Notes: a model not told the origin generated them from the sequence alone. A DNA stretch of 64,000 nt from Hydrolagus colliei (GCA_035084275.1 CM068771.1:4836001-4900000), one strand, 5' to 3'. Shown: positions 805-63,748, counted from the first letter of the stretch. Numbers and translations: made by a program.

Positions 805-912
805 CAACCTTTCCAAAAAAGAGAAGGAATATTCCTAAAGCAGAAATATAGACTATCACTGCAACTGCATTGTGTATTGTTACCTCGGTGTTTTGAGTAT
901 CGCAATCCAAAA
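805..912 (-). CDS. Gene 1 TM5 exon (108 nt): (I)LDCDTQNTEVTIHNAVAVIVYISALGIFLLFFGKV
   Basis: cccacag|TT...GTTG|gtaagt; open; same size and C..YxSxxG motif as paralog exons 37370-37477 and 58607-58714. Confidence 0.85.
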
Positions 913-962
913 CTGTGGGCAGAATTTAGATAGGTTGGATTACAATCCGAAGAAATATACTA

Positions 963-1376
963 CAGTAAAAGCTTGTTTGTCTGGCACCCAACCAATCAGA
1001 ACACTCAACCAACTGGTATCTCCCAATACAATTCATCATTCCAACAACTGAATCTCATACTGGAGCCATCTGGGACACTCACGAGTATGCTCACTTTGCG
1101 CATGCGTATAAAGCGTGCGCATGCGCACTTATTAAACTTAATGAATGCTGCAATTTTTATTTTACCAATCATTTTACTGAGTGCACTGGAATGCTTTATT
1201 GGTAAGTATCCATACAATATTCTGTTATTATTTAGTCTATTATTAATATGGTTTGTTTTAAAATAAGTAAAGTTTTTTTGTAGGATTTTCAGCAACTCGC
1301 CACTCAAATATCCGGCATATTTAATTAACCAGCACTGGTCAGGTCCCGAGGGTGCCGGATAAATGAGCTTTTACTG
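963..1376. mobile_element. Tc1/mariner Tigger-like MITE
   Basis: TA|CAGTAAAAGCTTGTTTGTCTGGCACCC ... GGGTGCCGGATAAATGAGCTTTTACTG. Confidence 0.8.
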
Positions 1377-1788
1377 TTTTCCCAACAGAAATTGTATATT
1401 TGTATCAACAGGCAGACACAACATGCTGCAATATGTATAATGTATTTTAATATAGTAAAATCGATTTTCAACACTTTGAGTAAGTATATCATAGCATATA
1501 CACAATGCATTGCTTTAGCGCTAAAATCTGTTTTTTAAAAATGTTTCAAGAGATGAGATAAAAGTGCCACTTTACGTTAGTTCCCACCAATGACAATTTG
1601 TTAGAAAATTCCCTGACAATCGCACAACTCGAGAGCATCGCTAGTGCACTTATCTCCACCGAACTTACAAGGTCAAATCTTTGTTCTCATCAAACCAAAC
1701 ACCGCACCTGCGCTCCCAACATGACACCAAAACACTTTGACTTTCAATCTGTTGTTTTGTTGTTTGTGACCTTCTATGGAATACTCAC

Positions 1789-1869
1789 TGCTTTGATGTA
1801 GTTTGTGAATGGGAACACCTGCGAGTATACAAGAACACACTCCATGCACAAGAAAAATATTACGCTGAT
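1789..1869 (-). CDS. Gene 1 TM4 exon (81 nt): (Y)QRNIFLVHGVCSCILAGVPIHKLHQS
   Basis: ttaacag|AT...AGCA|gtgagt; 81 nt as in both paralogs. Confidence 0.8.
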
Positions 1870-1920
1870 CTGTTAAGTAAAGTTTGAATAAATAATAATG
1901 ACATTTATGAAATTACGGTA

Positions 1921-2530
1921 CAGTAAAAGCCCATTTATCCTTGACCTGATCAACCATAACTTCCGTATAACTGGCACCTCAAAAAAAAGGTCCCCATTCG
2001 AATAACCGGATCTTATGGGCACAATCGCAGTGGTGCATTTAATGAGTCGATTGTCGCACGAGAGTACAGTACAATTAGTTGTGAATGCTGCCGGTAGTGG
2101 CACTTCCAGTTTTTCTTCTTAAGAGGGTCACTGTCGATTTTTTCCCTCCCTCTCTCCTTTTTCTCTCTCCCTCTTTTTCTTTCTCTCTCCCTCTCCTTCC
2201 TTCCTCTCTACCTCTCTCTTTCTATCTCTTTTTCCCCCCTCCCTCCCTCCTTCCCTCCCTCAGGGTGGAAAAAAATCCCCCGTCCGCCATTGTAGAAGTT
2301 TGCTTTCTGATTGTGTGCTGTGTTTATAGACTGTAATCGATATTTATCGCCTTATTGGTAAGTATCCATACAATATTGTTGTTATTTAGTCTATGATTAA
2401 TATGGTATGTTAAAAATAAGTTGATTTTTTTTGTGTTGGGTTTTCGGCAAATGGCTGCCCAAATATCCGGCATGCCATTGAACTGGCACTAGCCAGGTCC
2501 CAAGGGTGCCAGATAAACAGGTTTTTGCTG
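1921..2530. mobile_element. Tigger-like MITE, same family
   Basis: CAGTAAAAG.. TIRs, TA on both sides; 2355-2520 resembles 1198-1370. Confidence 0.8.
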
Positions 2531-2582
2531 TACATGCTATATATGTTTTTAAAAATCTACCTCTTAACGAAAATGAACTTAC

Positions 2583-2708
2583 AAACGTGTAACAAAATTG
2601 ATGTCATATTCATTTCAGTACTGAGGAAAATGGAGATTGAGTAGCACATCATTCCAGAAACGATGATACATCCAACCGCTGAGGACAGTTTGTATTCCAC
2701 TCCCATAT
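2583..2708 (-). CDS. Gene 1 TM3 exon (126 nt): (D)MGVEYKLSSAVGCIIVSGMMCYSISIFLSTEMNMTSILLHV
   Basis: ttcctag|AT...GTTT|gtaagt; open, hydrophobic, similar to 42395-42529 and 60376-60504. Confidence 0.8.
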
Positions 2709-3003
2709 CTAGGAAAGAACAGTATAAAGATTATGGTGAAATGGGATGTGTGTAAAATTACAACAGCGTGACAGTGTAATACAATACTTCTTTTTTGGGT
2801 GGAGGGGGGGGGGGTCATTTGGGTACCTAATACACGTGGAGTAAGGACACTTGCCCAACTTGCAGAGTACTAAGAGTGGCCAGTCGGGGAATATCTAAGT
2901 ACTCGTGTGTATGGAATGGAATATGAGGGAGTGAGGTGGAGGGATTGAGAGAGGGAGTTCCAGAGTTTTGGGGGGTAGTGGCTGAAAGCAAAACAACAAC
3001 AAC

Positions 3004-4907: not shown

Positions 4908-5009
4908 CTTCGTGTATCATGCAGAAAACAGATGAAATTAAGAGAGTGATGAAAGCAAGTATTTGGAGTCCCATAAAAACTCCAGTGAGCTGCATGTGGA
5001 TTTTGGAAT
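4908..5009 (-). CDS. Gene 1 TM2 exon (102 nt): (D)SKIHMQLTGVFMGLQILAFITLLISSVFCMIHE
   Basis: tttgtag|AT...GAAG|gtaagt; 102 nt in all three paralogs. Confidence 0.85.
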
Positions 5010-7620: not shown

Positions 7621-7737
7621 CATTATATTTCTTCATGCCAAGAAAGATTATGTGTATTGTCACACACAGAGTCATTACATTACTAACGAGCGCTATGATT
7701 GCTGCGGTTAGAAAATGTTGATAAAGCAGCACAACAC
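7621..7737 (-). CDS. Gene 1 TM1 exon (117 nt): (S)VVLLYQHFLTAAIIALVSNVMTLCVTIHIIFLGMKKYN
   Basis: atttcag|GT...AATG|gtaata; 117 nt in all three paralogs; lies within ORF 7568..7753. Confidence 0.87.
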
Positions 7738-9149: not shown

Positions 9150-11106
9150 TCAAAATTCAGAAGGGAACCAAGCAGAATATAGGAAGTGTAGGATAGAACT
9201 AAAAAAGGAAGTTAGAGGGGCAAAGAGACTGCATGAAAAACAATTAGCGAGTAAGATTAAGGGGAACCCTAAGGTTTTTTACCAACATATTAAGAGTAAA
9301 AGGTTGGTCAAGGAGAGGGTGGGGCCAATTAGGGACCTAGGAGGAAATCTCATTGTGGAGGCAGAGGGCATGGCTGATGTACTGAATGAGTACTTCGCCT
9401 CTGTCTTCACAAAAGAAAATGATACAGACAATGCCATGGTATTAGAGGAGAGGGTAGGAGAAATGGATAGAATAATTATAACCAGAGAGGAAGTGCTAAA
9501 AAGGTTGACGTCGCTCAAGGTGGATAAGTCACCTGGTCCGGATGGGATGCACCCTAGGTTACTAAGTGAGGCACGGGAGCAAATAGCAGGGACTCTGGCC
9601 ACGATCTTTCAATCTTCCTTGGACACAGGGGTCGTGCCAGAGGACTGGAGGATAGCTAATGTTTCTCCCTTGTATAAAAAGGGGCAGAAGGACAAGCCTG
9701 GTAACTACAGACCAGTCAGTCTAACGTCGGTAGTGGGCAAACTTCTAGAGTCCATAATCAGGGACAAGGTAGATCTTCACTTAGAAAGATATAGGCTAAT
9801 AAAGGACAGTCAACATGGATTTGTTAAAGGCAAATCTTGCCTTACAAATCTGATAGAATTTTTTGATGAGGTAACGGAATGGGTGGATAATGGTAGCGCA
9901 GTTGATGTAGTTTACATGGACTTTCAAAAGGCATTTGACAAAGTGCCACATGAGAGACTTATTATGAAATTAAAGGCCCATGGCGTAAAAGGGACAGTGG
10001 CAGCGTGGATCCACAACTGGCTGCGAGACAGAAAGCAGAGAGTTGTAGTGAGCGGCTGTTTTTCAGATTGGAGGGAAGTGAGCAGTGGTGTGCCACAGGG
10101 ATCGGTTTTGGGACCATTGCTGTTTGTAATCTACATCAATGATCTGGACTTGGGTGTACGGAGTACAGTTTCCAAGTTTGCAGATGACACTAAGTTAGGG
10201 AGAATAGTAAACAGTGAGGAGGATAGTAGCCATCTGCAAGAGGATATAGACAAATTGGTAAAGTGGGCAGACACATGGCAGATGAAGTTTAATGCAGAGA
10301 AGTGTGAGGTGATGCATTTTGGGAGAAGAAATGAAGGGAGGCAATATAGGCTAGATAGTACAATTTTAAATGGTGTGAAGGAACAGAGAGACCTGGGGAT
10401 TTGTGTTAGTGACTCGTTGAAGGTGGCAGGACAGGTAGACAAGGCTGTTAAGAAGGCATATGGGATACTAGGCTTTATAAATAGGGGTATAGAGTACAAA
10501 AGTCAGGAAGTGCTGACTAACCTCTATAGGACTTTGGTGAGGCCTCAGCTGGAATACTGTGTTCAATTCTGGTCACCACACTACAGAAAGGATGTGAAGG
10601 CATTGGAAAGGGTACAACGAAGATTTACTAGAATGGTGCCAGGATTGAGGGACTTCAGCTATGAGGAGAGGCTAGATAGGCTAGGGTTATTCTCTCTGGA
10701 GCAGAGAAGATTGAGGGGAGACCTAATAGAGGTTTATAAGATCATGAGGGGTTTCGACAGGGCAAATAGAGAAAAACTATTTCCACTCGTGGGTGAATCT
10801 GTGACTCGTGGTCACAGATTTAAAATAGTTTCAAGGCGCAGTAGAGGGGAGCTGAGGAGAAATTTTTTCACTCAGCGAGTTGTTCGAATCTGGAATGCAT
10901 TGCCTGAAAAGGTGGTGGAGGCTGATTCGATAACAACTTTTAAAAGGGAATTAGATCTTTATTTAGGGAGAACGGGTCTATTAGGCTATGGGGAGCGGGC
11001 AGGGCAATGGGATTGAATCGCTCTTTTCAAAGAGCCGGCACAGACTAGATGGGCCGAATGGCCTCCTTTTGTGCCGTAAAATTCTATGATTCTATGATTC
11101 TATGAT
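9150..11106 (+). mobile_element. CR1 LINE, 5'-truncated, young
   Basis: Open ORF2 RT region, 3' UTR and (ATTCTATG)3 tail. Confidence 0.95.
9304..11016 (+). CDS. CR1 ORF2 reverse transcriptase region (no endonuclease; 5'-truncated)
   Basis: KSPGPDG, YRPVSLTS, QHGF, DFQKAFDKV, GVPQGSVLGP, FADD. Confidence 0.9.
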   Translation: MVKERVGPIRDLGGNLIVEAEGMADVLNEYFASVFTKENDTDNAMVLEERVGEMDRIIITREEVLKRLTSLKVDKSPGPDGMHPRLLSEAREQIAGTLATIFQSSLDTGVVPEDWRIANVSPLYKKGQKDKPGNYRPVSLTSVVGKLLESIIRDKVDLHLERYRLIKDSQHGFVKGKSCLTNLIEFFDEVTEWVDNGSAVDVVYMDFQKAFDKVPHERLIMKLKAHGVKGTVAAWIHNWLRDRKQRVVVSGCFSDWREVSSGVPQGSVLGPLLFVIYINDLDLGVRSTVSKFADDTKLGRIVNSEEDSSHLQEDIDKLVKWADTWQMKFNAEKCEVMHFGRRNEGRQYRLDSTILNGVKEQRDLGICVSDSLKVAGQVDKAVKKAYGILGFINRGIEYKSQEVLTNLYRTLVRPQLEYCVQFWSPHYRKDVKALERVQRRFTRMVPGLRDFSYEERLDRLGLFSLEQRRLRGDLIEVYKIMRGFDRANREKLFPLVGESVTRGHRFKIVSRRSRGELRRNFFTQRVVRIWNALPEKVVEADSITTFKRELDLYLGRTGLLGYGERAGQWD

Positions 11107-11489: not shown

Positions 11490-11744
11490 TGTTGACAACA
11501 AGGAAGTGTGAATAGTTGCTCTGGCTGATGGAATTTTTAATGTTGCACGTGTACCACCCGCAGTCTGAGAGTCTTGCATCTTCAATTAAATATTTGCTAT
11601 TGTGTTTTTCTTCAGCTGTAAGTAGTTTCCCTTTGTGTGTCCACCAAACAGCATCAGGCATTCCACTTTTGACAACACAGCTCATCTCAACAACTTTAAC
11701 TACATAGATGGGATCTTGAACTATCAGTGGCCTTGATAATGTTT
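11490..11744 (-). CDS. Gene 1 Ig C2-type exon (255 nt)
   Basis: tcaatag|AA...AACA|gtaggt; encodes ETLSRPLIVQDP..MSCVV..WWT..SDCGWYTCNIKN..LVVN, with C-W-YxC Ig motifs. Confidence 0.92.
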
Positions 11745-14876: not shown

Positions 14877-15364
14877 TGTTGGAATGTAGCAGTTTTGTGT
14901 GTGACTCTGTAACAACACGTTTGTGTTTATCTGGCAGTTTAGACTGATTTAGACCAGATAACTATGTATTGTAGAAATATAACAAGTGTGTGTGACCATT
15001 GGATCAGATAACTTTGTAGTGCAGAAAGATAACAAGTGTGTGTGACCATTGGATCAGATACCTTTGTAGTGTAGAAAGATAACAAAGTGTGTGTGACCAT
15101 TGGATAACGCTCCTAATATGGGCATGTTGGTTGGGCAATACTGTCTTAACTGATTGGGTCCTGTAGGACAAAGAAAGCAAACTGAGTATATATGTGTTGA
15201 ATCCTCCAAGATTCAACGGTTCGAACTAACAAGTAACTATTCGAATCACAAGAGGAGTGCCTGTACTATAACTGGGATGTAGTACTGAATAAAAAGATCA
15301 TAAAACTCTATGATGACTGAAGATCGTTCCTTTGAGAAAACTCCCATTTCTTCCGAATCCAACA
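14877..15364 (+). repeat. 5' LTR (488 bp)
   Basis: TGTT...AACA; three ~50-bp U3 repeats each with CCATTGG; TATA-like TATATAT near 15187; AATAAA at 15288-15293. Confidence 0.97.
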
Positions 15365-15367
15365 ATT

Positions 15368-15385
15368 TGGCGTAGTCGGCAGGAT
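15368..15385 (+). promoter_or_regulatory. Primer-binding site complementary to tRNA-Ser
   Basis: TGGCGTAGTCGGCAGGAT is the reverse complement of the vertebrate tRNA-Ser(AGA/TGA) 3' end ATCCTGCCGACTACGCCA. Confidence 0.9.
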
Positions 15386-15884
15386 CACAGAAGGTAACAA
15401 GGACAGACATTGAACACGGATTGCCTAAGGTGAATCGGTAAAGGTGTATGGCTCGATTGATAAGGGCGGAACACGGTCTACCCCAGAAACGGTAAAGGTG
15501 TACGACTTGATTGATAAGGGCGGAACACGGTCTACCTCAGTTGAATCGGTAAAGGTGTACGACTTGGTTAACAAGGGCGGAACACGGGCTACCCCTGATA
15601 AAGTTACGGAATCTTTCTTAAAATTCCTCGGCACGTGTGGAACTGTTTGAACCTTCTCGTGATTCTTAAAGAAAGAACCGGATTTGCAGAAGACAAGAAA
15701 ACAAAGTGCGGTCAGACGTAATCTCGACGTAAGAAATATCTCTTTTGTTTGAGTTTGGATCCTTAGGAGACGTTATACAAGCGGGTTTTAGGTTTTAGAA
15801 AATTACCAAGTTTGAGAAGCCCATTCAGATCCTCGGGGTGTAATCCTCTATCGGCGTTGAAATTGCCTACGGCCTCAAGAAAAA

Positions 15885-17597
15885 ATGGTAAAAATGGTAG
15901 AAAAAAAAAGTGAAAAAAACACTTTACACAAAGGAGGGCAGGCACCTCCGGACGTGTCTGAAACCGAAATGTTGTGCGAACTAACACAAATCTTCCAGAA
16001 AAATATGAACTTACTTAAGCTCCAGCAGACTTTGGAAAATAAATATAACATGGGAACGGGACAGTGGTCTTTACCCAATATACAAAAATTATGGGGAAAA
16101 ACTACCCGCTCAAAGGGGAACGACCAGACAAGGTTGGCGATGATTGTCATGAGTCAGCTACGACAACGGAGTGAAATTATGCGTAATACCCAGTACGATA
16201 CAGATATGAAGAAAGCAAAGGAACAATTAAATGCAATGGCAGAACAATTGAGTAAAAAGCAAGCTGAAATTGAAAAGCTTAAAACTGAACTGTTTAAGCA
16301 AAAGGAGAAGGGTGTAAAAACATCGAGCGCTCCATCGGTACCGTATCAATCAGTATATCCATATTTAAATGTGTTACATGCATCTATTCCATCTTTACCT
16401 CCTGAGTATGCCAGTGATTATGAGTGTGATCCTTGGGACCCGTCGACTTGTCTACCGGACCCTTGGGGGGATGATAACCGTCCACCGCAATTGAGACCTA
16501 TGGTCACCCGATATCGTGCCCGGCGCGGACAGGGACCAGGAGGTCCGCCGGCAGCACGACCTGAAGAAGGGGCGAACGTCGGTCCGGTGGGTGGGGCTCA
16601 GGCATTCGGAGCTGTTTGGGTACCTTTTCATGAACACCAACCTGCCGATCCGGACAGAATCGACAAATGGTCAAAAGCATTGCCAGACCCAAAGAAAGGG
16701 TCATTGAAGACATGGGAAGAGCTTAACCGAATACGCACCATCTATCGGCTGCATCCTCAAGATGGTGTGCAAGTTTTGTCAGTAATGGCAACCGGTCGAA
16801 ACACCCAAGAATTGCAACAACAAGTTTATACCGCATTGGGCGAAAATGGAAATAATTTGAACGCTGGATGGGGAGCGATCAGACAATGGCTGAGAAATCA
16901 AGGTCCGGCCCGGGTGGACTGGAAGAAAATATCAGGCTGTACCCAAGAACCGACCGAAACGGTTGCTCAGTTTGATGAGCGCTTCAGGGCTGTGTGGATT
17001 GAACATTCGGGACTGGCTAACAACATGCAAAATGCAGACTTAGATGCTAACGAGGAGGGTCCTTTGAAACCATCTTTCATGGCCGGACTCAAAGGGGAAA
17101 TATCAAAATTGGTAAAATTAACGTTGCCCCTGTGGGAAGAACAAGGAGTAACGTTCGGTCAGTTGGTTGCACGCTGTATCCAAGTCGATAGGGACCAAGG
17201 GGTACAACTACGAGCATTTCAACGAGGAGAGAGAACTTCAGCGGGACAGTCATCCTTTGGACATAAACCTGGCAAATGCCGCAGATGTGGTAAAGAAGGT
17301 CACTGGGCTAAAACGTGCCGTGTTCGAATGAATGGGAATGGCGGCAACTTTAAAGCGTTTTCAAATAAGCAAAATCAGGATGATGACTGTGATGAGATAC
17401 ATAAACCTCGATCAAATCGGGAGCGTTTTGAAAGTCTTTCCTCTCGAATGCAGCGAGCCCTGTTGAATGCCGCTGAAGAAATTAACAAATGCTGTAGGTC
17501 CTGCTTCTCGACAGGTGTCGACGGCTTGGGGAGATTCACCAAAGGGAGGACACGATTTGGTCCCGGGAGAACGAGTGTATATCAAGAAGATACATAA
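15885..17597 (+). CDS. gag: Retroviral Gag (570 aa, open; last ~38 codons read through the deletion into an alternative IN frame)
   Basis: Late-domain-like YPYL and PPEY, MHR-like TQEPTETVAQFDERF, zinc knuckle CRRCGKEGHWAKTC. Confidence 0.93.
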   Translation: MVKMVEKKSEKNTLHKGGQAPPDVSETEMLCELTQIFQKNMNLLKLQQTLENKYNMGTGQWSLPNIQKLWGKTTRSKGNDQTRLAMIVMSQLRQRSEIMRNTQYDTDMKKAKEQLNAMAEQLSKKQAEIEKLKTELFKQKEKGVKTSSAPSVPYQSVYPYLNVLHASIPSLPPEYASDYECDPWDPSTCLPDPWGDDNRPPQLRPMVTRYRARRGQGPGGPPAARPEEGANVGPVGGAQAFGAVWVPFHEHQPADPDRIDKWSKALPDPKKGSLKTWEELNRIRTIYRLHPQDGVQVLSVMATGRNTQELQQQVYTALGENGNNLNAGWGAIRQWLRNQGPARVDWKKISGCTQEPTETVAQFDERFRAVWIEHSGLANNMQNADLDANEEGPLKPSFMAGLKGEISKLVKLTLPLWEEQGVTFGQLVARCIQVDRDQGVQLRAFQRGERTSAGQSSFGHKPGKCRRCGKEGHWAKTCRVRMNGNGGNFKAFSNKQNQDDDCDEIHKPRSNRERFESLSSRMQRALLNAAEEINKCCRSCFSTGVDGLGRFTKGRTRFGPGRTSVYQEDT

Positions 17598-17721
17598 AAA
17601 TCCGTTAGGTGCTAAGTGGGAAGGTCCCTACATGGTGTTGCTGACAACTCCTGCTGCAGTAAAAGTGGAAGGAAGGAAGGCTTGGATTCACGCGGCACAT
17701 GTGAAACGCTCCACTGTTTAA
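17476..17721 (+). pseudogene. pol: Integrase C-terminal remnant; PR, RT, RNase H and IN core deleted
   Basis: PGERVYIK..KWEGPYMVLLTTPAAVKVEGRKAWIHAAHVK is the class I IN C-terminal (GPY/F) motif. Confidence 0.88.
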
Positions 17722-17807
17722 GAACTTGTATTGTTTAAGCCACTGTGTGTTGATAATTTTTTTAAAAAAAAATTAGAATACTTTCATTTCTGTCAATATG
17801 AATAGGG

Positions 17808-18179
17808 ATGGTAACGGTAACCACGTCCCAACAGGGAGAAGCCCACGCTATCGATAAGCACAATGTGGCAGTTAATACCTATTTGTTAATGACACTTAAA
17901 ACCTCCATTGCCACAAATCGTACAAAATGTTGGGTTTGTAAGATTCCCCATAGTACAAAGGAAGGTTTTCCAATAAGGGTTGTTCCTTTTAATGTCACAA
18001 TGATGTTACAGTGGTTATTGTGTCAAAACAATATTGGTAATGTTACTGAATTTGAAATGGACACGAATGGGCCAGTTTTGCCCAAACAGCTGGAATCAGC
18101 TGGTTATTCCTCGACTCAGTTTTCGGGATGGTATCACCCGGACTATAAGGATACTTCACCAAGCCCTTCCCCCTTTATC
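17808..18179 (+). pseudogene. env: Env SU N-terminal remnant
   Basis: NRTKCWVC (CWxC motif) and N-glycosylation sequons; interrupted by an ectopic PPT/U3 copy. Confidence 0.8.
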
Positions 18180-18269
18180 TCAACAGTATTATGTTTAGAT
18201 TGTTGTGACAGAGTCACAAAAGAGGGGATTATGGGAATGTAGCAGTTTTGGGTGTGACTCTGTAACAAC

Positions 18270-18528
18270 CTATATCCCCGATGAGTCTGAAAATATTACC
18301 AATCTAGTATCTCACATGCATAGAGAAGTAAATAGGCTTAGATACGGCGATCCCCTTCCGGCCTGGTGGAAAGCCTGGTTGGAGGGATGGGGAGCCTGGT
18401 TCATGCACGTGCTAGTTATTGTGATAGCATTGTTATTAATCTTTTGTGTAATAATACAATGTATAAAGGTTTGCCTTAATCGTTTGGGCTTCTGTTGCAC
18501 CAGGTGTTTCGTTGTCGCTTTTACATAA
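18270..18528 (+). pseudogene. env: Env TM C-terminal remnant
   Basis: TYIPDESENIT, then W-rich region, membrane anchor VLVIVIALLLIFCVII and Cys-rich tail. Confidence 0.82.
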
Positions 18529-18572
18529 GCAACATCAACAGTATTATGTTTAGATTGTTGTGACAGAGTCAC

Positions 18573-18583
18573 AAAAGGGGGGA
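18573..18583 (+). other. Polypurine tract
   Basis: AAAAGGGGGGA immediately before the 3' LTR. Confidence 0.9.
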
Positions 18584-18584
18584 T

Positions 18585-19072
18585 TGTTGGAATGTAGCAG
18601 TTTTGTGTGTGACTCTGTAACAACACGTTTGTGTTTATCTGGCAGTTTAGACTGATTTAGACCAGATAACTATGTATTGTAGAAATATAACAAGTGTGTG
18701 TGACCATTGGATCAGATAACTTTGTAGTGCAGAAAGATAACAAGTGTGTGTGACCATTGGATCAGATACCTTTGTAGTGTAGAAAGATAACAAAGTGTGT
18801 GTGACCATTGGATAACGCTCCTAATATGGGCATGTTGGTTGGGCAATACTGTCTTAACTGATTGGGTCCTGTAGGACAAAGAAAGCAAACTGAGTATATA
18901 TGTGTTGAATCCTCCAAGATTCAACGGTTCGAACTAACAAGTAACTATTCGAATCACAAGAGGAGTGCCTGTACTATAACTGGGATGTAGTACTGAATAA
19001 AAAGATCATAAAACTCTATGATGACTGAAGATCGTTCCTTTGAGAAAACTCCCATTTCTTCCGAATCCAACA
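18585..19072 (+). repeat. 3' LTR (488 bp)
   Basis: No difference from the 5' LTR found on line-by-line comparison. Confidence 0.97.
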
Positions 19073-19270
19073 ATGCCCAAGGTTTTGCCCTTCTTGGAAT
19101 TGAACCCATTTGCAAGACGAGTGCTCCAACTTAAAGCCACCTTCGGGGATTAGATCAAGACCAGAGCAGACTTGGCTGTAATTAACCCATAAAAATAAGT
19201 TCAAAAGATTACTTAGTAATTGAAAATTCCAAGGTGCAGCCCAGTGAAGGGGAGCGAAAAGCGTACTTAC

Positions 19271-19615
19271 CTTCAACAAGTAAATATCTGAAGTAGACCT
19301 CAGAACTAGTTGATTGTCTGTGTGTTATTTCAAGCAGGTAATACCCAGTGTCCAGTTTTGTTAAGCGTTGCAGTGTGAGAGATCCATCGGTTGAATTTAT
19401 CTGTATTCTAGTTTGATAATACGCGTTAACTTCAATTTGAAGAGAAGTGTATTGATACCTGAGAATCATTGACTTCTTGACAGGGGTGAGATAGTACCAA
19501 TTGATTACATCCATATTTTTGAGTTGTTTATGTAGAACTCCAGGCAGTAAGATGAATGAATGTGTAGCAGCAAAAAAATTATTGGGATCCTTGGGCGTAG
19601 AAGTCATTGAAATAC
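19271..19615 (-). CDS. Gene 1 Ig V-type exon (345 nt), Cys-less CD2/CEACAM-N-like domain
   Basis: cttgcag|GT...GAAG|gtaagt; contains INWYY, RIQIN..DGSLTLQRL..DTGYY. Confidence 0.92.
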
Positions 19616-43947: not shown

Positions 43948-44064
43948 CTTTGTATTTATTTAAACCATAGAGCATTATGAATAGTCCAGAAGCAAAGGTG
44001 GTTACACTGCTAACTAGTGATGTTAAGGATGCAGAAAGTATGTGTTGATGTCCACGAACAATAC
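43948..44064 (-). CDS. Gene 2 TM1 exon (117 nt): (S)IVRGHQHILSASLTSLVSSVTTFASGLFIMLYGLNKYK
   Basis: gcttcag|GT...AAAG|gtaata. Confidence 0.87.
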
Positions 44065-44784: not shown

Positions 44785-46720
44785 GGACAACCAGCATCCT
44801 GCCTGCCTGCCTGCCTGTCATTGAGTCCTGGATGAGAGACAACTTCCTCCAGCTGAATGTCCGCAAGACTGAGGCCCTCCTGATTGGCTCGCGTCAGTGC
44901 CTCCGCACCTCAGGTGCTGTCAGCATCAGCATCCATAGATTCATAGATTCATAGAATTTTACGGCACAAAAGGAGTCACAGATTCGCCCACGAGTGGAAA
45001 TAGCTTTTCTCTATTTGCCCTGTCGAAACCCCACATGATCTTATAAACCTCTATTAGGTCTCCCCTCAATCTTCTCTGCTCCAGAGAGAATAACCCTAGC
45101 CTATCTAGCCTCTCCTCATAGCTGAAGTCCCTCAATCCTGGCACCATCCTAGTAAATCTTCTTTGTACCCTTTCCAATGCCTTCACATCCTTTCTGTAGT
45201 GTGGTGACCAGAATTGAACACAGTATTCCAGCTGAGGCCTCACCAAAGTCTTATAGAGGTTAGTCAGCACTTCCTGACTTTTGTACTCTATACCCCTATT
45301 TATAAAGCCTAGTATCCCATGTGCCTTCTTAACAGCCTTGTCTACCTGTCCTGCCACCTTCAACGAGTCACTGACACCAATCCCCAGGTCTCTCTGTTCC
45401 TTCACACCATTTAAAATTGTACTATCTAGCCTATATTGCCTCCCTTCATTTCTTCTCTCAAAATGCATCACCTCACACTTCTCTGCATTAAACTTCATCT
45501 GCCATGTGTCTGCCCACTTTACCAATTTGTCTATATCCTCTTGCAGATGGCTACTATCCTCCTCACTATTTACTATTCTCCCTAACTTAGTGTCATCTGC
45601 AAACTTGGAAACTGTACTCCGTACACCCAAGTCCAGATCATTGATGTAGATTACAAACAGCAATGGTCCCAAAACTGATCCCTGTGGCACACCACTGCTC
45701 ACTTCCCTCCAATCTGAAAAACAGCCGCTCACTACAACTCTCTGCTTTCTGTCTCGCAGCCAGTTGTGGATCCACGCTGCCACTGTCCCTTTTACGCCAT
45801 GAGCCTTTAATTTCATAATAAGTCTCTCATGTGGCACTTTGTCAAATGCCTTTTGAAAGTCCATGTAAACTACATCAACTGCGCTACCATTATCCACCCA
45901 TTCCGTTACCTCATCAAAAAATTCTATCAGATTTGTAAGGCAAGATCCAAGGCGGCACTCTCCATCTCTCTAAGCCAGTCAGGAGCCTGGGTGTCTTGTT
46001 CCACACTGAACTGTCCTTCCTCCCCCACATCTGTGCCATGATCAGTACTGCTTTCCACCACCTTTGTTGCATCGCCAGACTCCGCCACTACCTCATCCCT
46101 CAGGCTGGCGAAACCCCAGTCCACCCATTTGCCACATCAAGGGTCCATTATGGAAGCTCCCTCCTCTTCGGCCTTCCCGATTCTTCCCTTCCCAAGGTGC
46201 AGATCATCTGGAATTCTGCAGCTCGTGCCCTCACCTGCACCACACTCCACGACCACATAATTCCCACTGTCGCCCAGCTCTACTGGCTTCCCATCCCCCA
46301 GAGGATTGAATTCAAGATCCTCGTCCTTATCTTCAAGGTCATTCATGGCCTTGCACCCACCCCCCACCCACACCTCTCTGGCCTGTTGTACCCTACGAAT
46401 ATCCCCCCCCCCCCCCCCCCCGCCTCCATTCAGCAGGCTCTGCCAGCTCCTTGACCCCCACCTGGGTGCCCAACCATTGGCGGATGAGCTTTCAGCCTCT
46501 CTGCCCCCACACTCTGGAACTCCATCCCACAGTCCCTTCAAGGATGGTCTCAAGACCCTCTTCTTCGACCCCGCCTTCTACTGCCCTCCTAATTGTCTCC
46601 CTCCCACCCCTCCCCCCTATCCTGCCCCCCTCTCTTGGTCAGGTCCCAACCTGACCGCTCAGTGCCTTGGGACGTCCTCCCGGCGTGAAAGGTGCTCTAT
46701 AAATGTAATTTTGTTGTTGC
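44785..46720 (+). mobile_element. L2 LINE fragment split by CR1 44935-45946
   Basis: SWMRDNFLQLNVRKTEALLIG before the CR1; SLGVLF..LYWLPIPQRIEFKIL after it. Confidence 0.85.
44935..45946 (-). mobile_element. CR1 fragment inserted in an L2, with ~270-bp deletion near the 3' end
   Basis: RT ORF 44959..45897; tail joined to the body at a GAG microhomology near 44974. Confidence 0.92.
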
Positions 46721-46989: not shown

Positions 46990-47241
46990 TGTTCACGGTG
47001 AGGAAGTATGAACGGTTTCTCTGGCTGACCTCATTTTTCACATTGCACGTATACCAGCCACAGTGTGAGATCTTTGGATTATTGAAGAACAATGTGTTTT
47101 CAGAATCTGTGCTGTTTAAAATTGTTTCTCCTCTTGTCCACCAAATTTGAATGTTTTTTTTCTCCTTGATAACACAGTTCAGTTTAACAGCATTAGTCAC
47201 GTAGATGGGATTTTGAATGATCAGTGGTGATGACAAAAATT
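46990..47241 (-). CDS. Gene 2 Ig C2-type exon (252 nt)
   Basis: cccatag|AA...AACA|gtaggt; LNCVI..IWWT..SHCGWYTCNVKN. Confidence 0.92.
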
Positions 47242-47833
47242 CTATGGGAAAAGGCAAACAGAGAGAAAAATGTTGAGTGTTAAGGCTCTTTAGATAACAA
47301 TCCAGGAGGACATTCCTTAATTTACTCTCCAAAAAGACAAATTGCAATTTCAGAAAATCCTCATCATAATAATAATCTTTTCATTTGTTACAGTACCTTA
47401 TCATATCATTGAGACATCTCATAAAATACTTCATAAAATATACTGTAAAGTGGATTGACTGTATATTTTGAGAGGGAAATGTGGCAGCTAATTGCGCACA
47501 CATGTGTCCCACAAACAAATTCTGGATTTTTATTAACAGTACAATTAACCCTCATCAAAGGCGACTTTATCAATTGCGAATTAAAGTACACGCGATGAAA
47601 AAAAAGCCTCACTTTCTTGCGCAGGGCGCATAAAACTTGTACGTGCTGGCTGGCCCCCGCGCGCATGCGCACTTGTGAGGGCACCGGGAGCTCCCGACTA
47701 AATCCAATGATTCCTCGGCTGGCCCCCTGCGCTTTGCATCCTTAGGAAAATCAGATTACTCTTTGTATGGTAAACAGAAGAGACAGAGAGAGAGACTGCT
47801 AATGCTTCCAGGAACAAAAGTAAAATAATAATA

Positions 47834-48864
47834 GACTGGAGGGAAGTGAGCAGTGGTGTGCCACAGGGATCAGTTTTGGGACCATTGCTCTTTGTAATCT
47901 ACATCAATGATCTGGACTTGGGTGTAGGGAGTACAGTTTCCAAGTTTGCAGATGACACTAAGTTAGGGAGAATAGTAAATAGTGAGGAGGATAGTAGCCA
48001 TCTGCAAGAGGATATAGAAAAATTGGTAAAGTGGGCAGACACATGGCAGATGAAGTTTAATGCAGAGAAGTGTGAGGTGATGCATTTTGGGAGAAGAAAT
48101 GAAGGGAGGCAATATAGGCTAGATAGTACAATTTTAAATGATGTGAAGGAACAGAGACCTGGGGATTTGTGTTAGTGACTCGTTGAAGGTGGCAGGACAG
48201 GGAGACAAGGCTGATAAGAAGGCATATGGGATACTAGGCTTTATAAATAGGGGTATAGAGTACAAAAGTCAGGAAGTGCTGACTAACCTCTATAAAACTT
48301 TGGTGAGGCCTCAGCTGGAATACTGTGTTCAATTCTGGTCACCACACTACGGAAAGGATGTGAAGACATTGGAAAGGGTACAAAGAAGATTTACTAGGAC
48401 GGTGCCAGGATTGAGGGACTTCAGCTATGAGGAGAGGCTAGATAGGCTAGGGTTATCCTCTCTGGAGCAGAGAAGATTGAGGGGAGACCTAATAGAGGCT
48501 TATAAGATCATGAGGGGTTTCGACAGGGCAAATAGAGAAAAGCTATTTCCACTCGTGGGCGAATCTGTGACTCGTGGTCACAGATTTAAAATAGTTTCAA
48601 GGCGAAGTAGAGGGGAGCTGAGGAGAAATTTTTTCACTCAGCGAGTTGTTGGAATCTGGAATGCATTGCCTGAAAAGGTGGTGGAGGCTGATTCGATAAC
48701 AACTTTTAAAAGGGAATTAGATCTTTATTTAGGGAGAACAGGTCCATTAGGCTATGGGGAGCGGGGAGGGCAGTGTGATTGAATCGCTCTTTTCAAAGAG
48801 CCAGCACAGACTAGATAGGCCGAATGGCCTCCTTTTGTGCCTTAAACTTCTATGAATCTATGAA
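47834..48864 (+). mobile_element. CR1 fragment, frameshifted
   Basis: RT split over ORFs 47846..48175 and 48183..48782; tail present. Confidence 0.92.
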
Positions 48865-49509: not shown

Positions 49510-49881
49510 TTTCAATTTCCAAGTTTATGGTGTTTACAGCATAAAGCTGAAATCTTTCTGAGGTATTGCTTACTTTTTGTACCTGTCCTTCATAAATGCC
49601 ACTATCAGTTATTTCTAAATGCTGGAGTTCTATAGAGCCGGTCCTTTTATCAAACTTCAGTCGACGTTTATAAAATACATTGATGAGAATTCTGGTTTCA
49701 GGTGATGAATATCGCAGGATAACCGTATTCTTCTCAGGAATTATATAGAACCAATCAATCTTTTCATTCCCTTCAAGATGTTTGTTATGAAATATTCTCA
49801 TTGTAACAGAAGAATCCAAACCAACAAACATAGTTTCATGGTTCATCAGGACATGAGTATCTGTCACTACAGCACGACCCT
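49510..49881 (-). CDS. Gene 2 Ig V-type exon (372 nt), Cys-less
   Basis: ctttcag|AG...GAAA|gtaagt; IDWFY, RLKFD..TGSIELQHL..DSGIY. Confidence 0.92.
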
Positions 49882-50855: not shown

Positions 50856-51270
50856 TTCCTACTTTTACTTCCTAAATATAGTATCTTGCATTTATCTGCA
50901 TTAGAATTTCAACTAAATAGTTCAGCTGAGACAGATGTAGAAGAGCAACGGTTAAAGAGCAAATACAAAAATAAATTCTTGCCCAGTGAAACATGGGGGG
51001 TGGGGGACAGGGCAGAACACAAACTGAAAAGAAATTACTGGAAGAAACAGGATACCTGCAAACTTTGTGATGCGGAACTGCATGCAATTTGATACAAGAA
51101 AGTTACTAGTCAATATGGTAAAACAAAATTTATACAATGCTGCTCAGGTGGGGTTACATCCCAGAGCGCTGGGCAGTCATGACAGTAGTCATGGTCAAAG
51201 ATGGTCTTCAAGCATGACCTGAAGATGGGGAAGGAAGGGCAAGGTGTAGGGATGGAGGAAGAGAATTCCA

Positions 51271-52970
51271 GCCTCTGTCTTCACAAAAGAAAATGATACA
51301 GACAATGCCATGGTATTAGAGGAGAGGGTAGGAGAAATGGATAGAATAATTATAACCAGAGAGGAAGTGCTAAAAAGGTTGACGTCGCTCAAGGTGGATA
51401 AGTCACCTGGTCCGGATGGGATGCACCCTAGGTTACTAAGTGAGGCACGGGAGCAAATAGCAGGGACTCTGGCCACAAACTTTCAATCTTCCTTGGACAC
51501 AGGGGTCGTGCCAGAGGACTGGAGGATAGCTAATGTTACTCCCTTGTATAAAAAGGGGCAGAAGGACAAGCCTGGTAACTACAGACCAGTCAGTCTAACG
51601 TCGGTAGTGGGCAACTTCTAGAGTCCATAATCAGGGACAAGGTAGATCTTCACTTAGAAAGATATAGGCTAAAAAAGGACAGTCAACATGGATTTGTTGA
51701 AGGCAAATCTTGCCTTACAAATCTGATAGAATTTTTTGATGAGGTAACGGAATGGGTGGATAATGGTAGCGCAGTTGATGTAGTTTACATGGACTTTCAA
51801 AAGGCATTTGACAAAGTGCCACATGAGAGACTTATTATGAAATTAAAGGCCCATGGCATAAAAGGGACAGTGGCAGCGTGGATCCACAACTGGCTGCGAG
51901 ACAGAAAGCAGAGAGTTGTAGTGAGCGGCTGTTTTTCAGATTGGAGGGAAGTGAGCAGTGGTGTGCCACAGGGATCGGTTTTGGGACCATTGCTGTTTGT
52001 AATCTACATCAATGATCTGGACTTGGGTGTACGAAGTACAGTTTCCAAGTTTGCAGATGACACTAAGTTAGGGAGAATAGTAAACAGTGAGGAGGATAGT
52101 AGCCATCTGCAAGAGGATATAGACAAATTGGTAAAGTGGGCAGACACATGGCAGATGAAGTTTAATGCAGAGAAGTGTGAGGTGATGCATTTGGGGAGAA
52201 GAAATGAAGGGAGGCAATATAGGCTGGATAGTACAATTTTAAATGGTGTAAAGGAACAGAGAGACCTGGGGATTTGTGTTAGTGACTCGTTGAAGGTGGC
52301 AGGACAGGTAGACAAGGCTGTTAAGAAGGCATATGGGATACTAGGCTTTATAAATAGGGGTATAGAGTACAAAAGTCAGGAAGTGCTGACTAACCTCTAT
52401 AGGACTTTGGTGAGGCCTCAGCTGGAATACTGTGTTCAATTCTGGTCACCACACTACAGAAAGGATGTGAAGGCATTGGAAAGGGTACAACGAAGATTTA
52501 CTAGGATGGTGCCAGGATTGAGGGACTTCAGCTATGAGGAGAGGCTAGATAGGCTAGGGTTATTCTCTCTGGAGCAGAGAAGATTGAGGGGAGACCTAAT
52601 AGAGGTTTATAAGATCATGAGGGGTTTCGACAGGGCAAATAGAGAAAAACTATTTCCACTCGTGGGTGAATCTGTGACTCGTGGTCACAGATTTAAAATA
52701 GTTTCAAGGCGCAGTAGAGGGGAGCTGAGGAGAATTTTTTTCACTTAGCGAGTTGTTCGAATCTGGAATGCATTGCCTGAAAAGGTGGTGGAGGCTGATT
52801 CGATAACAACTTTTAAAAGGGAATTAGATCTTTATTTAGGGAGAACGGGTCTATTAGGCTATGGGGAGCGGGCAGGGCAGTGGGATTGAATCGCTCTTTT
52901 CAAAGAGCCGGCACAGACTAGATGGGCCGAATGGCCTCCTTTTGTGCCGTAAAATTCTATGATTCTATGA
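51271..52970 (+). mobile_element. CR1 fragment, frameshifted, inserted in an L2 remnant
   Basis: Near-identical to 9406-11100 with small indels. Confidence 0.93.
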
Positions 52971-54372: not shown

Positions 54373-54888
54373 GCTGTATCTGTAGCTGTGACTGTAGCTA
54401 AGTCTATGTCTATGGCTGTAGCTGTACCTATGGCTGTAGCTGTGTCTATGACTGTAGCTGTGTCTGTAGCTGTGTCTATGACTGTAGCTGTGTCCATGAC
54501 TGTAGCTGCGTCCATGACTGTAGCTGTGTCTATGGCTGTAGCTGTGACTGTAGCTGTGTCTATGGCTGTAGCTGTGACTGTAGCTGTGTCTATGGCTGTA
54601 GCTGTGTCTATGACTGTAGCTGTGACTGCAGCTGTGTCTATGGCTGTAGCTGTGTCTATGGCTGTAGCTGTGTCTATGGCTGTGTCTATGGCTGTAGCTG
54701 TGTCTATGGCTGTAGCTGTGTCTATGGCTGTAGCTGTGACTGTAGCTGTGTCTATGGCTGTAGCTGTGACTGTAGCTGTGTCTATAGCTGTAGCTGTGAC
54801 TGTAGCTGTGTCTATGGCTGTAGCTGTGACTGTAGCTGTGTCTATGGCTGTAGCTGTGACTGTAGCTGTGTCTGTGGCTGTAGCTGTG
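54373..54888. repeat. Short (~0.5 kb) copy of the same satellite in intron 1 of gene 2
   Basis: Same hexamers and same junction to the signal exon. Confidence 0.97.
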
Positions 54889-54902
54889 GTTGTGCTACTT
54901 GC

Positions 54903-54945
54903 CTTGAGGAGCCAGGAGGAGGAGGAGAGCGGCTGTGAGCAACAT
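54903..54945 (-). CDS. Gene 2 signal-peptide exon, identical to that of gene 1
   Basis: Same 43 nt as 32833-32875, with GC donor. Confidence 0.8.
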
Positions 54946-55336
54946 TCCCGCTGCCTGACTCCAGGGCGATGGTCAAGTCACAAGATGGCGGCCTAACGGC
55001 AACTCAGCTCTTTAACGGCAACAAGTTCAAAATGAAAGACAAACAAAGCGGGCGGCTGGCGCCGCTGCCCGGCTCTCTGGTCCCCGCCCCTCCCTCCCTC
55101 CCTCCCTCCCGCCCGGGGGCTATTCGCTCGGTAACGCTGACTCCGTCCGTTCCGCCGCCTTTATCCCGGCTCCGCAGCCGCTTCCCCTTCGCCTCTGGTA
55201 ACGGTTTCAGTTTGTCCGCCTCCCGTCCCCGCGCTCACTCACTGCGCAGGCGCCGCACTACCCTTTCCCGCGTTCACTCAATGCGCAGGCGCCATAGCTC
55301 CGTCCCCGCGCTCACTCACTGCAGGCGCCGCCCTGA
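54946..55336 (-). promoter_or_regulatory. CpG-rich promoter and 5' UTR of gene 2
   Basis: Near-identical to 32876-33330, with three NRF1-like units instead of five. Confidence 0.7.
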
Positions 55337-57899: not shown

Positions 57900-58260
57900 C
57901 AAGCTGGGGACAGGTGGAGGGGTATGTGGGGGGGGTGAGGGAAGGGGGGCATTAGGAGTTGCCGATGGGACCATCAAAGAGGAGAGTCGTGTGGTAGAAC
58001 TTGAAGGAGGCCAGTAAAGTCAGGAAGCATAGGGACTGTGGGATGGAGTTCCAGAAGTATGAGGCAGAGTCGTTAAAGGCTCACCTGCCAATGTTGGGTC
58101 GGATGGAGTCAGGGAATGTGAAGGAGGCCCAAGTCTGCTGAGTGGAGAGGGCGGCCAGGTTGGTAAGATGTTGGAAGGTCACAGATGTAGGGTGGGGCGA
58201 GGTTGTGGAGGGCTTTAAAATTGAGGAGCAGGATCTTGAATCCAGGATCCTCTGGATGAT
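57900..58260 (-). mobile_element. L2 LINE 3' fragment
   Basis: Similar to 452-700 and 12830-13120. Confidence 0.72.
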
Positions 58261-58606: not shown

Positions 58607-58714
58607 TTTGCTTGGCAAAAAAGAGAATCATTAGTCCCATGACAGACATATAGGCTTCCATTATAAAAACATTTTTTGTTTCCACCACAGTACCTGGAAC
58701 TTTGCATTTTTCAA
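58607..58714 (-). CDS. Gene 3 TM5 exon (108 nt): (V)EKCKVPGTVVETKNVFIMEAYMSVMGLMILFFAKQ
   Basis: ttcacag|TT...CAAA|gtaagt. Confidence 0.85.
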
Positions 58715-59101: not shown

Positions 59102-59182
59102 CGATTTGGTATGCTCTGTATATTAGGTTACATGAAACAACTACAGAAAAGGCTCCATTTGCAAGAAAAATGCTCGAAGGAT
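59102..59182 (-). CDS. Gene 3 TM4 exon (81 nt): (Y)PSSIFLANGAFSVVVSCNLIYRAYQI
   Basis: ctctcag|AT...ATCG|gtgagt; IFL..G shared with gene 1. Confidence 0.8.
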
Positions 59183-60375: not shown

Positions 60376-60504
60376 ATTGGCTTAACAAAAATGAAGATGT
60401 TAGTCTGATTTGAGGACGCAGGAAAAGAAAGCCAGTATAGCTCATCATTCCGAAATTCAATCCACATACTAATCCTGAGAAAATTCTGTATGCGAGGCCA
60501 ATAT
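60376..60504 (-). CDS. Gene 3 TM3 exon (129 nt): (D)IGLAYRIFSGLVCGLNFGMMSYTGFLFLRPQIRLTSSFLLSQ
   Basis: tttctag|AT...CAAT|gtaagt. Confidence 0.85.
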
Positions 60505-61374: not shown

Positions 61375-61682
61375 AGAACCTGCTGCCTTTGCTCCATCGG
61401 GTCTGGCATCCTCCATGTCCCCCGAATCCTCCACTCCACCCTCAGCAGCCGTGCCTTCAGCCACTATGCCCCAAGGCTCTGGAACTCTCGTCCTCATTCC
61501 CTTCACCTCGCCCCCTCTCTTCCGAGTTTCAGGTCAAAGTTAAAGACCTTTCTATTCGTCCGCACCTTTGGTCACCTTTCTATCCCTGCCCCTGGCTCAG
61601 TCACGGGATCTTCTAGTGTGAAGCGCTCTGAGATGCTGTCCAGCGTGGAGGGCGCTATATAAATCAATGTTGTTGTTGTTGT
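61375..61682 (+). mobile_element. L2 LINE 3' fragment
   Basis: SRAFSHYAPRLWNS..FRSKLKTFLF; (TTG)n tail. Confidence 0.85.
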
Positions 61683-61849
61683 AGCACATTATCACTTCCT
61701 CCAGATGTCTCAAAGCGATTCCCAGAATACATTGTTTGGTCCGATGAGTGTGCACAGCCACCTCAAGTCATCAGCCTGAAATATTGACATTTCCTCTCCA
61801 CATGACCGGCAATCAGTGGATTGCTCCCAGCCACTTTATTTTGTTGCGT

Positions 61850-62147
61850 TTCGTAGTTAAGTGGCTGGAGCACTCGCCTCACAAGCAAGACACCTTCGTT
61901 CAATTCCAGACACAGCGAAATCTTCAGCAACTTTCATACTCCACACACGTGATAAGAATCCTCAAAACGAAATGATAATAAACTGATCATTTTAAACCCT
62001 GACTGTTTGTGGGACACTCCTGTGCATGTTTCACATGCAAATCTAGTCAATTCACTTTACAGCATATTCTGTGAAATGCCATGATACATCTGGAAGACGT
62101 GAAAAGTGCCATATCAAATGCAAGGATTATTATTATTATCATTATTA
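61850..62147 (+). mobile_element. SINE copy (followed by an inverted copy ~62150-62370)
   Basis: tRNA-like head at 61850 and (TAT)n tail at ~62125-62147. Confidence 0.7.
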
Positions 62148-62823
62148 TCAATGAATTGACTCGATGTTTTGTGAGCAAAACTGCAGCCAATTGTGCACAA
62201 CAATGTCCCACAAACAAGTCATGGGGTAAAGTGACTGATTTATTTACTATCAGCAACTGGTTTCCATCTTACTGCCTGGGGCCTGTGGGGTAAGGAAACT
62301 CACACTGCATTTTGCCAGGACTCTTGTTTGCAAGGCGAATGCTCAGTGGCCAGCTAAAGCAGCTACAACTTGATTAGCATCAGCCACTGAAGCACGGGGA
62401 AAGGTTCTCCTCTCCTGTTTTTCCCACAATGATCAATTCTGCTGCTCAAATGTTAAATTTGAATGTTTTTTGTGGTCAGTTTACAGGCAATCACCTTACC
62501 AGTGTTAGGGTCCCTTGAGGACCCAAGCGTGTGATAGTGAACACAATAACGTGAATTGACTGTATAATTTGTTGGCAGAACACAGCAGTTAATTGTGCAC
62601 AGTCGTGGATTGAGTTACCAATCATTGTTATTTTCAAAGGATTATAATGGAGAACAAGTAGAAAACAATTCATTCATTTGCTTCATAATAATTTCTGCAT
62701 GAATTGGTGTTGAACAATAAATTCTGTGAAGCAATTTGAGACGTTTGACCACATCAAAATTGAGAGTGTATTTTTTAGTTATGGAGGTAGGTAGAAATTT
62801 AAACCATCCAAGAGAGTGCTTAC

Positions 62824-62925
62824 CTTCAGCTAATATGGACAGCATGGATGCAATTAACAGACAGACCAAGGACAATACTTGAAGGAGGATAAAAACTGCA
62901 GTGAGATTCTCATGGTATTTGTAAG
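62824..62925 (-). CDS. Gene 3 TM2 exon (102 nt): (A)YKYHENLTAVFILLQVLSLVCLLIASMLSILAE
   Basis: ttcacag|CT...GAAG|gtaagc. Confidence 0.87.
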
Positions 62926-63101
62926 CTGTGAATATAAACAAAAATTTGACAAGATTAACAGCTTTGTATCTGTATCTGCAACAAGATATATTCCAAACAA
63001 CAAGTGTGTTAGTCACTTCATTTCAAATCAATAATTAAAATTTAAAATCAGATTTTAATAGTCTTTGAATTGATGAAAGAAAGCAAGAAAACGTTTACTA
63101 C

Positions 63102-63218
63102 CTTTGTATATTTTTAAGGCATGCAACATCATGAAGACAACTACGCATAAATTTATTACATTACTAATCAGTGCGAAGATAGATGCTGACAGGATGTGAC
63201 GATAAATAAACACAGCCC
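63102..63218 (-). CDS. Gene 3 TM1 exon (117 nt): (G)AVFIYRHILSASIFALISNVINLCVVVFMMLHALKIYK
   Basis: gtttcag|GG...AAAG|gtagta. Confidence 0.87.
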
Positions 63219-63496
63219 CTGAAACAGTAAGTTTACATGAATTTAGATCATTTAAAAAAAATTCTAAGAATTTATCTACGTTAAATTATTATTATGATGA
63301 CAGTTGCATAAACTGCATAAACTGTAAATTTTTTAGCATTCTTCACATGCATCCTTCAAGACATGTTTGAAAGCCCTCCTCCACCACCAAGCCTTTAGCA
63401 CATTTCTACGCTCCACCCTACGACCAACAGGGTTCAAATCCCTGATTATATAATTTTGCATTCCAATATAAAAATCATAAGATTGTAAAAACATAC

Positions 63497-63748
63497 CATT
63501 GACATTGAGGAAATGTGATCGGTTGCTCTGGCTGACCTCATTTTTCACAATACATGTGTACCAGCCACAGTCTTCTATATTGGCTTTTGCAATGACCAAT
63601 GTGCTTTGAAACAATCTACTGCTAACAACTTCATCTTCCTTTGTCCACCAGATTTCAGTGGCCTTTCCCCCTTGCTCTTGGCAACACAATTCAACCATTT
63701 CAGTTACGTAGAGGGGATTTTGAAATATCAGTGGCATTGACAAGCTTC
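63497..63748 (-). CDS. Gene 3 Ig C2-type exon (252 nt)
   Basis: tggacag|GA...AATG|gtatgt; ELCCQ..IWWT..EDCGWYTCIVKN. Confidence 0.9.

Follow-up and report, generated by a model that had tools for sequence, protein, structure and literature searches.

CD47, termed "the only 5-TM receptor of the immune system", is encoded by a gene found in higher vertebrates only (PMC8410850). In this protein (PF08204 and PF04549; PDB 7MYZ) a single IgV domain stands directly before five transmembrane (TM) helices. The C15-C245 bond, which joins the Ig domain to the TM4-TM5 loop, is essential, and the pair belongs to a set of just seven residues whose conservation extends to viral CD47-like proteins (PMC8410850). 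Other CD47 features are Y184, which bridges extracellular loops (ECL) 1 and 2, the RVVSWF linker and, atop helix III, a GLG motif (PMC8410850). The SIRP family first appears in tetrapods according to one survey (PMC13262535). The CD2/SLAM proteins (including CD48 and 2B4) and the CEACAM/HEPACAM proteins are built differently, with a distal V domain that lacks an intrasheet disulfide, then a C2 domain, and a single-pass or GPI anchor. Here we describe a 64-kb stretch of the Hydrolagus colliei genome (GCA_035084275.1 CM068771.1:4836001-4900000; hereafter the window) that very probably holds three tandem genes, A, B and C, of a chondrichthyan family of immunoglobulin-superfamily (IgSF) surface proteins, with a type I start and five helices. 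The family resembles the CD2/SLAM and CEACAM/HEPACAM proteins in its ectodomain, and the CD2/SLAM and CEACAM families likewise are tandem and fast-evolving; its five helices set it apart from all of them.

The three genes were predicted from genomic sequence. An earlier sequence-only reading of the same DNA had proposed three minus-strand paralogs, each with five phase-1 exons of 117, 102, 126 to 135, 81 and 108 nucleotides (nt) following the C2 exon. The minus strand was scanned for segments of these lengths that were bounded by AG and GT, open in phase 1 and contained a hydrophobic stretch. All 15 exons were located; each was open, preceded by a pyrimidine tract and AG and followed by a GT donor, in most cases gtaagt or gtgagt, and each encoded one hydrophobic segment. 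Splice sites were enumerated around Ig-like open segments to place the V and C2 exons. Genes A and B proved complete from leader to TM5, and gene C is without its 5' exons in the window. All exon junctions in the three genes are in phase 1.

All exons lie on the minus strand. Gene A begins with a 43-nt leader exon at 32833-32875 (ATG, MLLTAALLLLLAPQ and 1 nt, with the GC donor CAAG/GCAAGT), found by tblastn and direct reading. Its V exon (19271-19615, 345 nt, phase 1-1) has no cysteines and was placed by splice sites and Pfam (V-set, 2e-10, with a weak 2B4 match). The C2 exon (11490-11744, 255 nt), placed in the same way, carries the motif DCGWYTC. The helix exons of gene A, identified by splice and frame scan and, for the first four, by hydropathy, are TM1 at 7621-7737 (117 nt), TM2 at 4908-5009 (102 nt), TM3 at 2583-2708 (126 nt), TM4 at 1789-1869 (81 nt) and TM5 at 805-912 (108 nt, donor gtaagtaa). 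Gene B has a leader exon at 54903-54945, identical to that of gene A, also with a GC donor and found by the same means. A V exon at 49510-49881 (372 nt; splice sites, Pfam and homology) and a C2 exon at 46990-47241 (252 nt; splice sites and Pfam) follow, and the splice and frame scan gave TM1 at 43948-44064 (117 nt), TM2 at 43222-43323 (102 nt), TM3 at 42395-42529 (135 nt), TM4 at 39113-39193 (81 nt) and TM5 at 37370-37477 (108 nt). The V and leader exons of gene C lie past the window end. Its C2 exon (63497-63748, 252 nt; splice sites and Pfam) is followed after just 278 nt by TM1 at 63102-63218 (117 nt), and then by TM2 at 62824-62925 (102 nt), TM3 at 60376-60504 (129 nt; by hydropathy the least hydrophobic helix), TM4 at 59102-59182 (81 nt) and TM5 at 58607-58714 (108 nt), again from the splice and frame scan. 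The limits of the interval singled out in the sequence-only reading, 805 and 63748, are the last base of the gene A TM5 exon and the first base of the gene C C2 exon.

A search for the ordered chain 117, 102, 126-135, 81 and 108 nt returned 46 chains on the minus strand and none on the plus strand. Protein matches across the paralogs were significant for TM1 (E values of 1e-8 to 1e-10), TM2 (2e-7), TM5 (6e-7) and C2 (2e-19). The exons were the sole non-transposon similarity among the three gene regions, and introns matched via transposons only. When spliced, the paralog products aligned over their full length, and their TM regions aligned end to end with 27 invariant positions. Values of dN/dS were 0.41-0.64 at dS of 0.8-1.3, with no stop or frameshift across the 15 helix exons. 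Judged by these substitution ratios, the paralogs are shown to be under moderate purifying selection, a pattern unexpected for dead sequence.

The leader exons were recognized through a relative in the elephant shark, Callorhinchus milii. The leader of its protein A0A4W3IIQ8 (MLLTAALLLLLAPQ) gave two 100% minus-strand tblastn matches, at 32875-32834 and 54945-54904, each followed by 1 base and a GC donor (GC dinucleotides at 32831-32832 and 54901-54902). On this match genes A and B begin with these two exons. A leader scan restricted to canonical GT donors found none, because the real leader has a GC donor. Approximately 430 bp around the leaders (32819-33251 and 54889-55331) are 95.5% identical between genes A and B, and within these promoter/leader blocks a stretch of 241 nt that surrounds the ATG shows no difference. 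At the V exons the two genes encode proteins of only ~30% identity. Set against this divergence, the identity of the 5' block suggests that gene conversion or concerted evolution has acted on the 5' end alone. A GC-rich tandem repeat of 38/77 nt at 33134-33326, ~260-450 nt upstream of the gene A start codon, lies partly within the promoter block common to both genes.

To the ectodomain, Pfam assigned a V-set domain with a weak 2B4 match and an Ig_3/I-set (C2) domain, and the top PDB sequence matches were CEACAM and CD48. Neither the V exon of gene A nor that of gene B encodes a cysteine, and C2 keeps its B- and F-strand cysteines; this pairing of a Cys-less V domain with a disulfide-type C2 domain is that of the CD2/SLAM/CEACAM ectodomain. 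The single-pass or GPI anchor of those proteins is not seen, and five helix exons follow C2 instead. A basking-shark "HEPACAM-like" protein, the sole single-pass relative retrieved, reaches 32% identity.

In the helix region Pfam found no significant domain, only sub-threshold noise. A Kyte-Doolittle scan with a threshold of 1.5 gave five segments in genes A and B and in the two shark proteins described below, and exon maps and hydropathy together bore out the tandem V, C2 and five-helix architecture that had been read from the sequence, with a reservation about the third helix of gene C to which we return. The linker between C2 and TM1 reads F-L-x-V-N-G/S and passes directly into helix 1. Three to six lysines and arginines follow TM1, an acidic loop follows TM2 and K/R residues follow TM5, so that the charge counts agree with the loops proposed beforehand. 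Hydropathy and positive-inside charges fit a predicted five-span topology with the N-terminus out and the C-terminus in.

Two cysteines outside the C2 disulfide were conserved. One is in the E-F loop of C2, at the membrane-proximal end of the domain, within the motif D/H-C-G-x-Y-T-C. The other is the fourth residue encoded by the TM5 exon and falls in the TM4-TM5 loop. Each is invariant in all family members that cover the position. The extra Cys of the D-x-G-x-Y-x-C motif is absent from the basking-shark protein.

In a word-indexed search C. milii A0A4W3IIQ8 was the best homology match; it aligned with gene B in the Ig part only, at 78% identity, and together with the 100% leader match it confirmed the cartilaginous-fish source that had been surmised. 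The TM region alone gave no match in this search at E <=10. A profile of the three contiguous C2 exons retrieved, among its single-domain matches, XP_067829902/3 of Heptranchias perlo (419 and 414 aa) and XP_067865339-41 of Heterodontus francisci. Thus the shark search for V-C2-5TM proteins that the sequence-only reading had advised yielded full-length relatives in two elasmobranchs, with either V, C2 and five helices or V, C2, C2 and five helices. Their RefSeq labels are "uncharacterized protein" in Heptranchias, where a truncated neighbour is called "A33 antigen-like", and "CEACAM1-like" or "uncharacterized" in Heterodontus, in keeping with the earlier remark that no named gene has this plan. 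In the literature that could be searched, no description of an Ig(V-C2)-five-helix family of this kind was found.

The coding exons of the Heptranchias gene measure 49/330/270/117/102/129/81/108 nt, all with phase-1 junctions, and a tail exon lies ~10 kb downstream; the gene has two alternative tails. Its helix-exon lengths match the window plan to the nucleotide, and window proteins matched its TM exons by tblastn. The Heterodontus exons (58/306/270/270/138/102/90/120/96/99 nt) are all in phase 1 and are followed by a tail that leaves this phase. The Heterodontus members differ from the window genes by a second C2 domain, an additional 90-nt exon and a tail that is longer. Between the sharks and the window, C2 is 41-47% identical and the TM exons are recognizable, with identical length in Heptranchias. 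These alignments and gene models indicate that the family is real, unnamed and conserved between a holocephalan and two elasmobranchs, and that it is already modelled in two shark genomes. In the Heptranchias gene region a second V-like exon (23830-24123) lies between the annotated V and C2 exons and is unused in XP_067829902; it may be an alternative or a decayed V exon.

The elephant-shark record differs. The Ensembl model of A0A4W3IIQ8, the sole close relative annotated in C. milii, reads through the C2 donor into the intron (residues ~217-254), and the corresponding read-through peptide of the gene B intron is ~75% identical to its C-terminal peptide. By this comparison, the helix exons of the C. 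milii paralog are unannotated in the Ensembl model. The suggestion that these exons are hidden thus holds for that model and fails for the two shark genomes, where Gnomon joins them to the Ig exons.

For comparison with CD47 we mapped the gene of Octodon degus. Its exons measure 46/348/90/108/93/93/93/32/25... nt, of which the five that follow one another in phase 1 (90/108/93/93/93) each encode a single helix, as the sequence-only reading had stated. The family shares with CD47 an Ig ectodomain directly before five helices that run, in the family as predicted, from N out to C in, and one helix per phase-1 exon. Both have a basic loop after helix 1. At the third residue of the TM2 exon, CD47 and four of five family members have K, and CD47 shares with genes B and C a Y at the fourth. 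A Tyr stands at the TM3-exon start, in the first extracellular loop, in 4/5 members (the Heterodontus relative is the exception). The Cys of the TM4-TM5 loop occupies the fourth position of the TM5 exon throughout the family and the third in CD47, and in both cases the adjoining Ig domain has an extra Cys. In both, the third helix is glycine/serine-rich and weakly hydrophobic. Short, alternatively spliced tails, known for the family from the shark models, are a further likeness.

There are also differences. Helix exons of 117/102/126-135/81/108 nt in the family contrast with 90/108/93/93/93 nt in CD47. A V and a C2 domain stand in place of the single CD47 IgV, and the V domain lacks the canonical disulfide; Pfam reports a generic V-set and a second, C2 domain instead of the CD47-type IgV (PF08204). 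The family is a tandem multigene family and CD47 a single gene. No sequence method used detected similarity. Neither PF04549 nor PF08204 matched genes A, B or C, even at E <=10, nor did PF04549 match the two shark proteins. A search of the TM profile against PDB found no CD47 match, only sub-threshold noise. Alignment with hhalign to a mammal-only CD47 TM alignment of 35 sequences gave probabilities of 0.9% and 0.4% (P 0.06-0.16). In a 5x5 exon-pair score matrix the matched pairs ranked 80 of 120 permutations, that is, without signal. The SWF of the RVVSWF linker and the conserved GLG are absent from the family. Homology with CD47, one of the two origins entertained in the sequence-only reading, was thus not detected by Pfam, PDB profile search, hhalign or exon-pair permutation. 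By these tests the family is CD47-like in build and falls outside CD47 as sequence defines it.

Structure prediction was performed on the public shark protein. Fragments of the TM3-TM5 exons were left out of the alignment because they were misplaced onto helix 1. With this shallow alignment, AlphaFold placed five helices after C2 with no reliable packing. Foldseek comparison of the low-confidence shark model with PDB and BFVD returned Ig-domain matches only, and CD47 was absent from the top 50, a result that for a model of this quality does not count against CD47.

We consider that genes A, B and C most plausibly encode a signal peptide, a Cys-less CD2/SLAM/CEACAM-like V domain, a C2 domain and five helices, with one phase-1 exon per helix. 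By analogy with CD2/SLAM/CEACAM proteins, the V domain would be the ligand-binding face. The E-F loop Cys of C2 may form a disulfide with the invariant Cys that the TM5 exon encodes at its fourth position, within the extracellular TM4-TM5 loop; the ectodomain would then be anchored to the helix bundle, in the way that C15-C245 anchors it in CD47. This apparent mirroring of the CD47 inter-domain disulfide by the cysteine pair is our best mechanistic inference, and is no proof of descent. Short, alternatively spliced cytoplasmic tails would follow TM5, as in the shark models. With low certainty, we suggest that the products may be rapidly diversifying leukocyte or cell-surface recognition molecules, acting as ligands or counter-receptors and not as kinase- or ITAM-coupled receptors. 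The proposal that they are ligands of SIRP-like receptors is pure speculation.

Several points weigh against this account. Within the window neither tail exons nor poly(A) sites could be located, and shark tail peptides gave no credible match to it. The third helix of gene C is the weakest and falls below the 1.5 threshold, and all fourth helices are weakly hydrophobic. The AlphaFold model is of low confidence (pLDDT 58.9, with the TM4 region <50). In C. milii the TM exons may go unused, or a secreted V-C2 form may be made, and both the disulfide and the function are things that we infer. The TM exons might even be relics or belong to a separate gene, the product being a secreted or otherwise anchored V-C2 protein, and the C. 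milii paralog model, which ends after C2 by intron read-through, would agree with this. We regard that reading as very improbable: all 15 exons are open with intact splice sites despite dS of ~1, and their lengths are kept between the holocephalan window and the elasmobranch gene. The TM1 exon has no start codon and starts in phase 1, directly compatible with C2, and in two sharks the Gnomon models run from C2 on into the TM exons. The 278-nt intron between C2 and TM1 in gene C, together with the common phase, makes a separate "5-TM gene" very unlikely.

If genes A, B and C do encode five-helix surface proteins, the origin of the helix module can be read in two ways. It may be a true homologue of the CD47 TM domain, from an ancient CD47-related lineage or the donor of the CD47 module, that has diverged past recognition; we give this a substantial chance, somewhat short of even. 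The common gene logic of five phase-1 helix exons directly after an Ig exon, as mapped in Octodon, speaks for it, as do the K, Y and Tyr landmarks at matching intron-relative positions, the character of the third helix, and short CD47 tail exons that leave phase 1 as the Heterodontus tail does. So does the TM5-exon Cys (residue 4 or 3), in each case paired with an extra Ig Cys, the CD47 pair being one conserved as far as viral CD47-like proteins (PMC8410850). Against it stand the absence of any Pfam, PDB, hhalign or permutation signal, with a CD47 profile drawn from mammals only, the missing SWF and GLG motifs, and an ectodomain that is of CD2/CEACAM type and not a CD47-type IgV.

Those same negative sequence tests, and exon lengths unlike those of CD47, are what would be seen if the module had converged on CD47, a chondrichthyan IgSF gene having gained phase-1 helix exons, for example by serial duplication of one TM exon. 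Symmetric phase-1 exons are the norm for the ectodomain and TM exons of the Ig superfamily, so added helix exons would be in phase 1 by default, and the extra 90-nt phase-1 exon of Heterodontus shows that the module tolerates exon gain. On the other hand, the five helices are not recognizably alike among themselves, several landmarks share their position with CD47, and the inter-domain pair of cysteines, at the same two sites in each case, would need two origins. Convergence is likewise a serious candidate that does not reach an even chance, and on present evidence it and common ancestry are about equally likely.

The remainder of the window is vertebrate-like (43% G+C, CpG observed/expected 0.36) and rich in transposon fragments. 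An assembly gap, a run of N at 34165-34310, lies between the gene B 3' end and the gene A promoter, 3.1 kb downstream of the gene B TM5 exon and 1.3 kb upstream of the gene A leader exon. It falls in none of the mapped exons. The exon plan is independent of the gap because no mapped exon spans or abuts it, and only the unmapped tail exon or exons of gene B could be touched. Open reading frames (ORFs) that cross the gap are translations of N. An 11-kb satellite with an 18/30-nt unit (GGCTGTAGCTGTGTCTAT...) fills 21810-32824 in intron 1 of gene A, and a 0.5-kb copy occupies 54380-54888 at the start of intron 1 of gene B (both from Tandem Repeats Finder). In both genes the satellite sets in a few bases past the leader-exon donor. 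Because it is open in all six frames, it produces spurious ORFs of 500-1250 aa.

The intron between V and C2 of gene A contains a young LTR-type element (14877-19074). It is bounded by two 490-nt direct repeats, at 14877-15366 and 18585-19074, which are 100% identical to one another, and in its interior a gag-like ORF of 570 aa (15885-17597) encodes a CCHC zinc knuckle. Fragments of a LINE family with reverse transcriptase (RVT_1), 94-98% identical, were found at 9304-11016 (+), 44962-45969 (-), 47774-48779 (+) and 51250-52745 (+), in introns and spacers; two are within the C2-to-TM1 introns of genes A and B. A SINE-like repeat occurs 3' of the TM5 exon in all three genes (484-696, 35716-35877 and 57954-58167) and at six or more further sites on both strands, with a translation that contains LHNLAPPYI and FKSHLKTLLF. 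It was considered as a conserved tail exon and rejected, since it is dispersed throughout the window on both strands.

Annotation of these genes appears to be systematically deficient: the family is without a name, and the only Ensembl model retrieved from the elephant shark does not include the helix exons. In a doubtful scenario, the CD47 module might derive from an ancient gnathostome IgSF-5TM family, and so not be an invention of higher vertebrates. Cartilaginous fishes would have kept that family as a tandem array of diversifying genes, with the module joined to a V-C2 ectodomain of CD2/SLAM type and tethered by the same disulfide from Ig domain to ECL2; its members might then be polymorphic "self" ligands for paired myeloid/NK receptors. 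The family is in any case probably a second Ig-plus-five-helix family beside CD47, with the exon layout of CD47 and matching candidate tethering cysteines. Either the origin of the CD47-type anchor moves back to early jawed vertebrates, or the same solution evolved twice.

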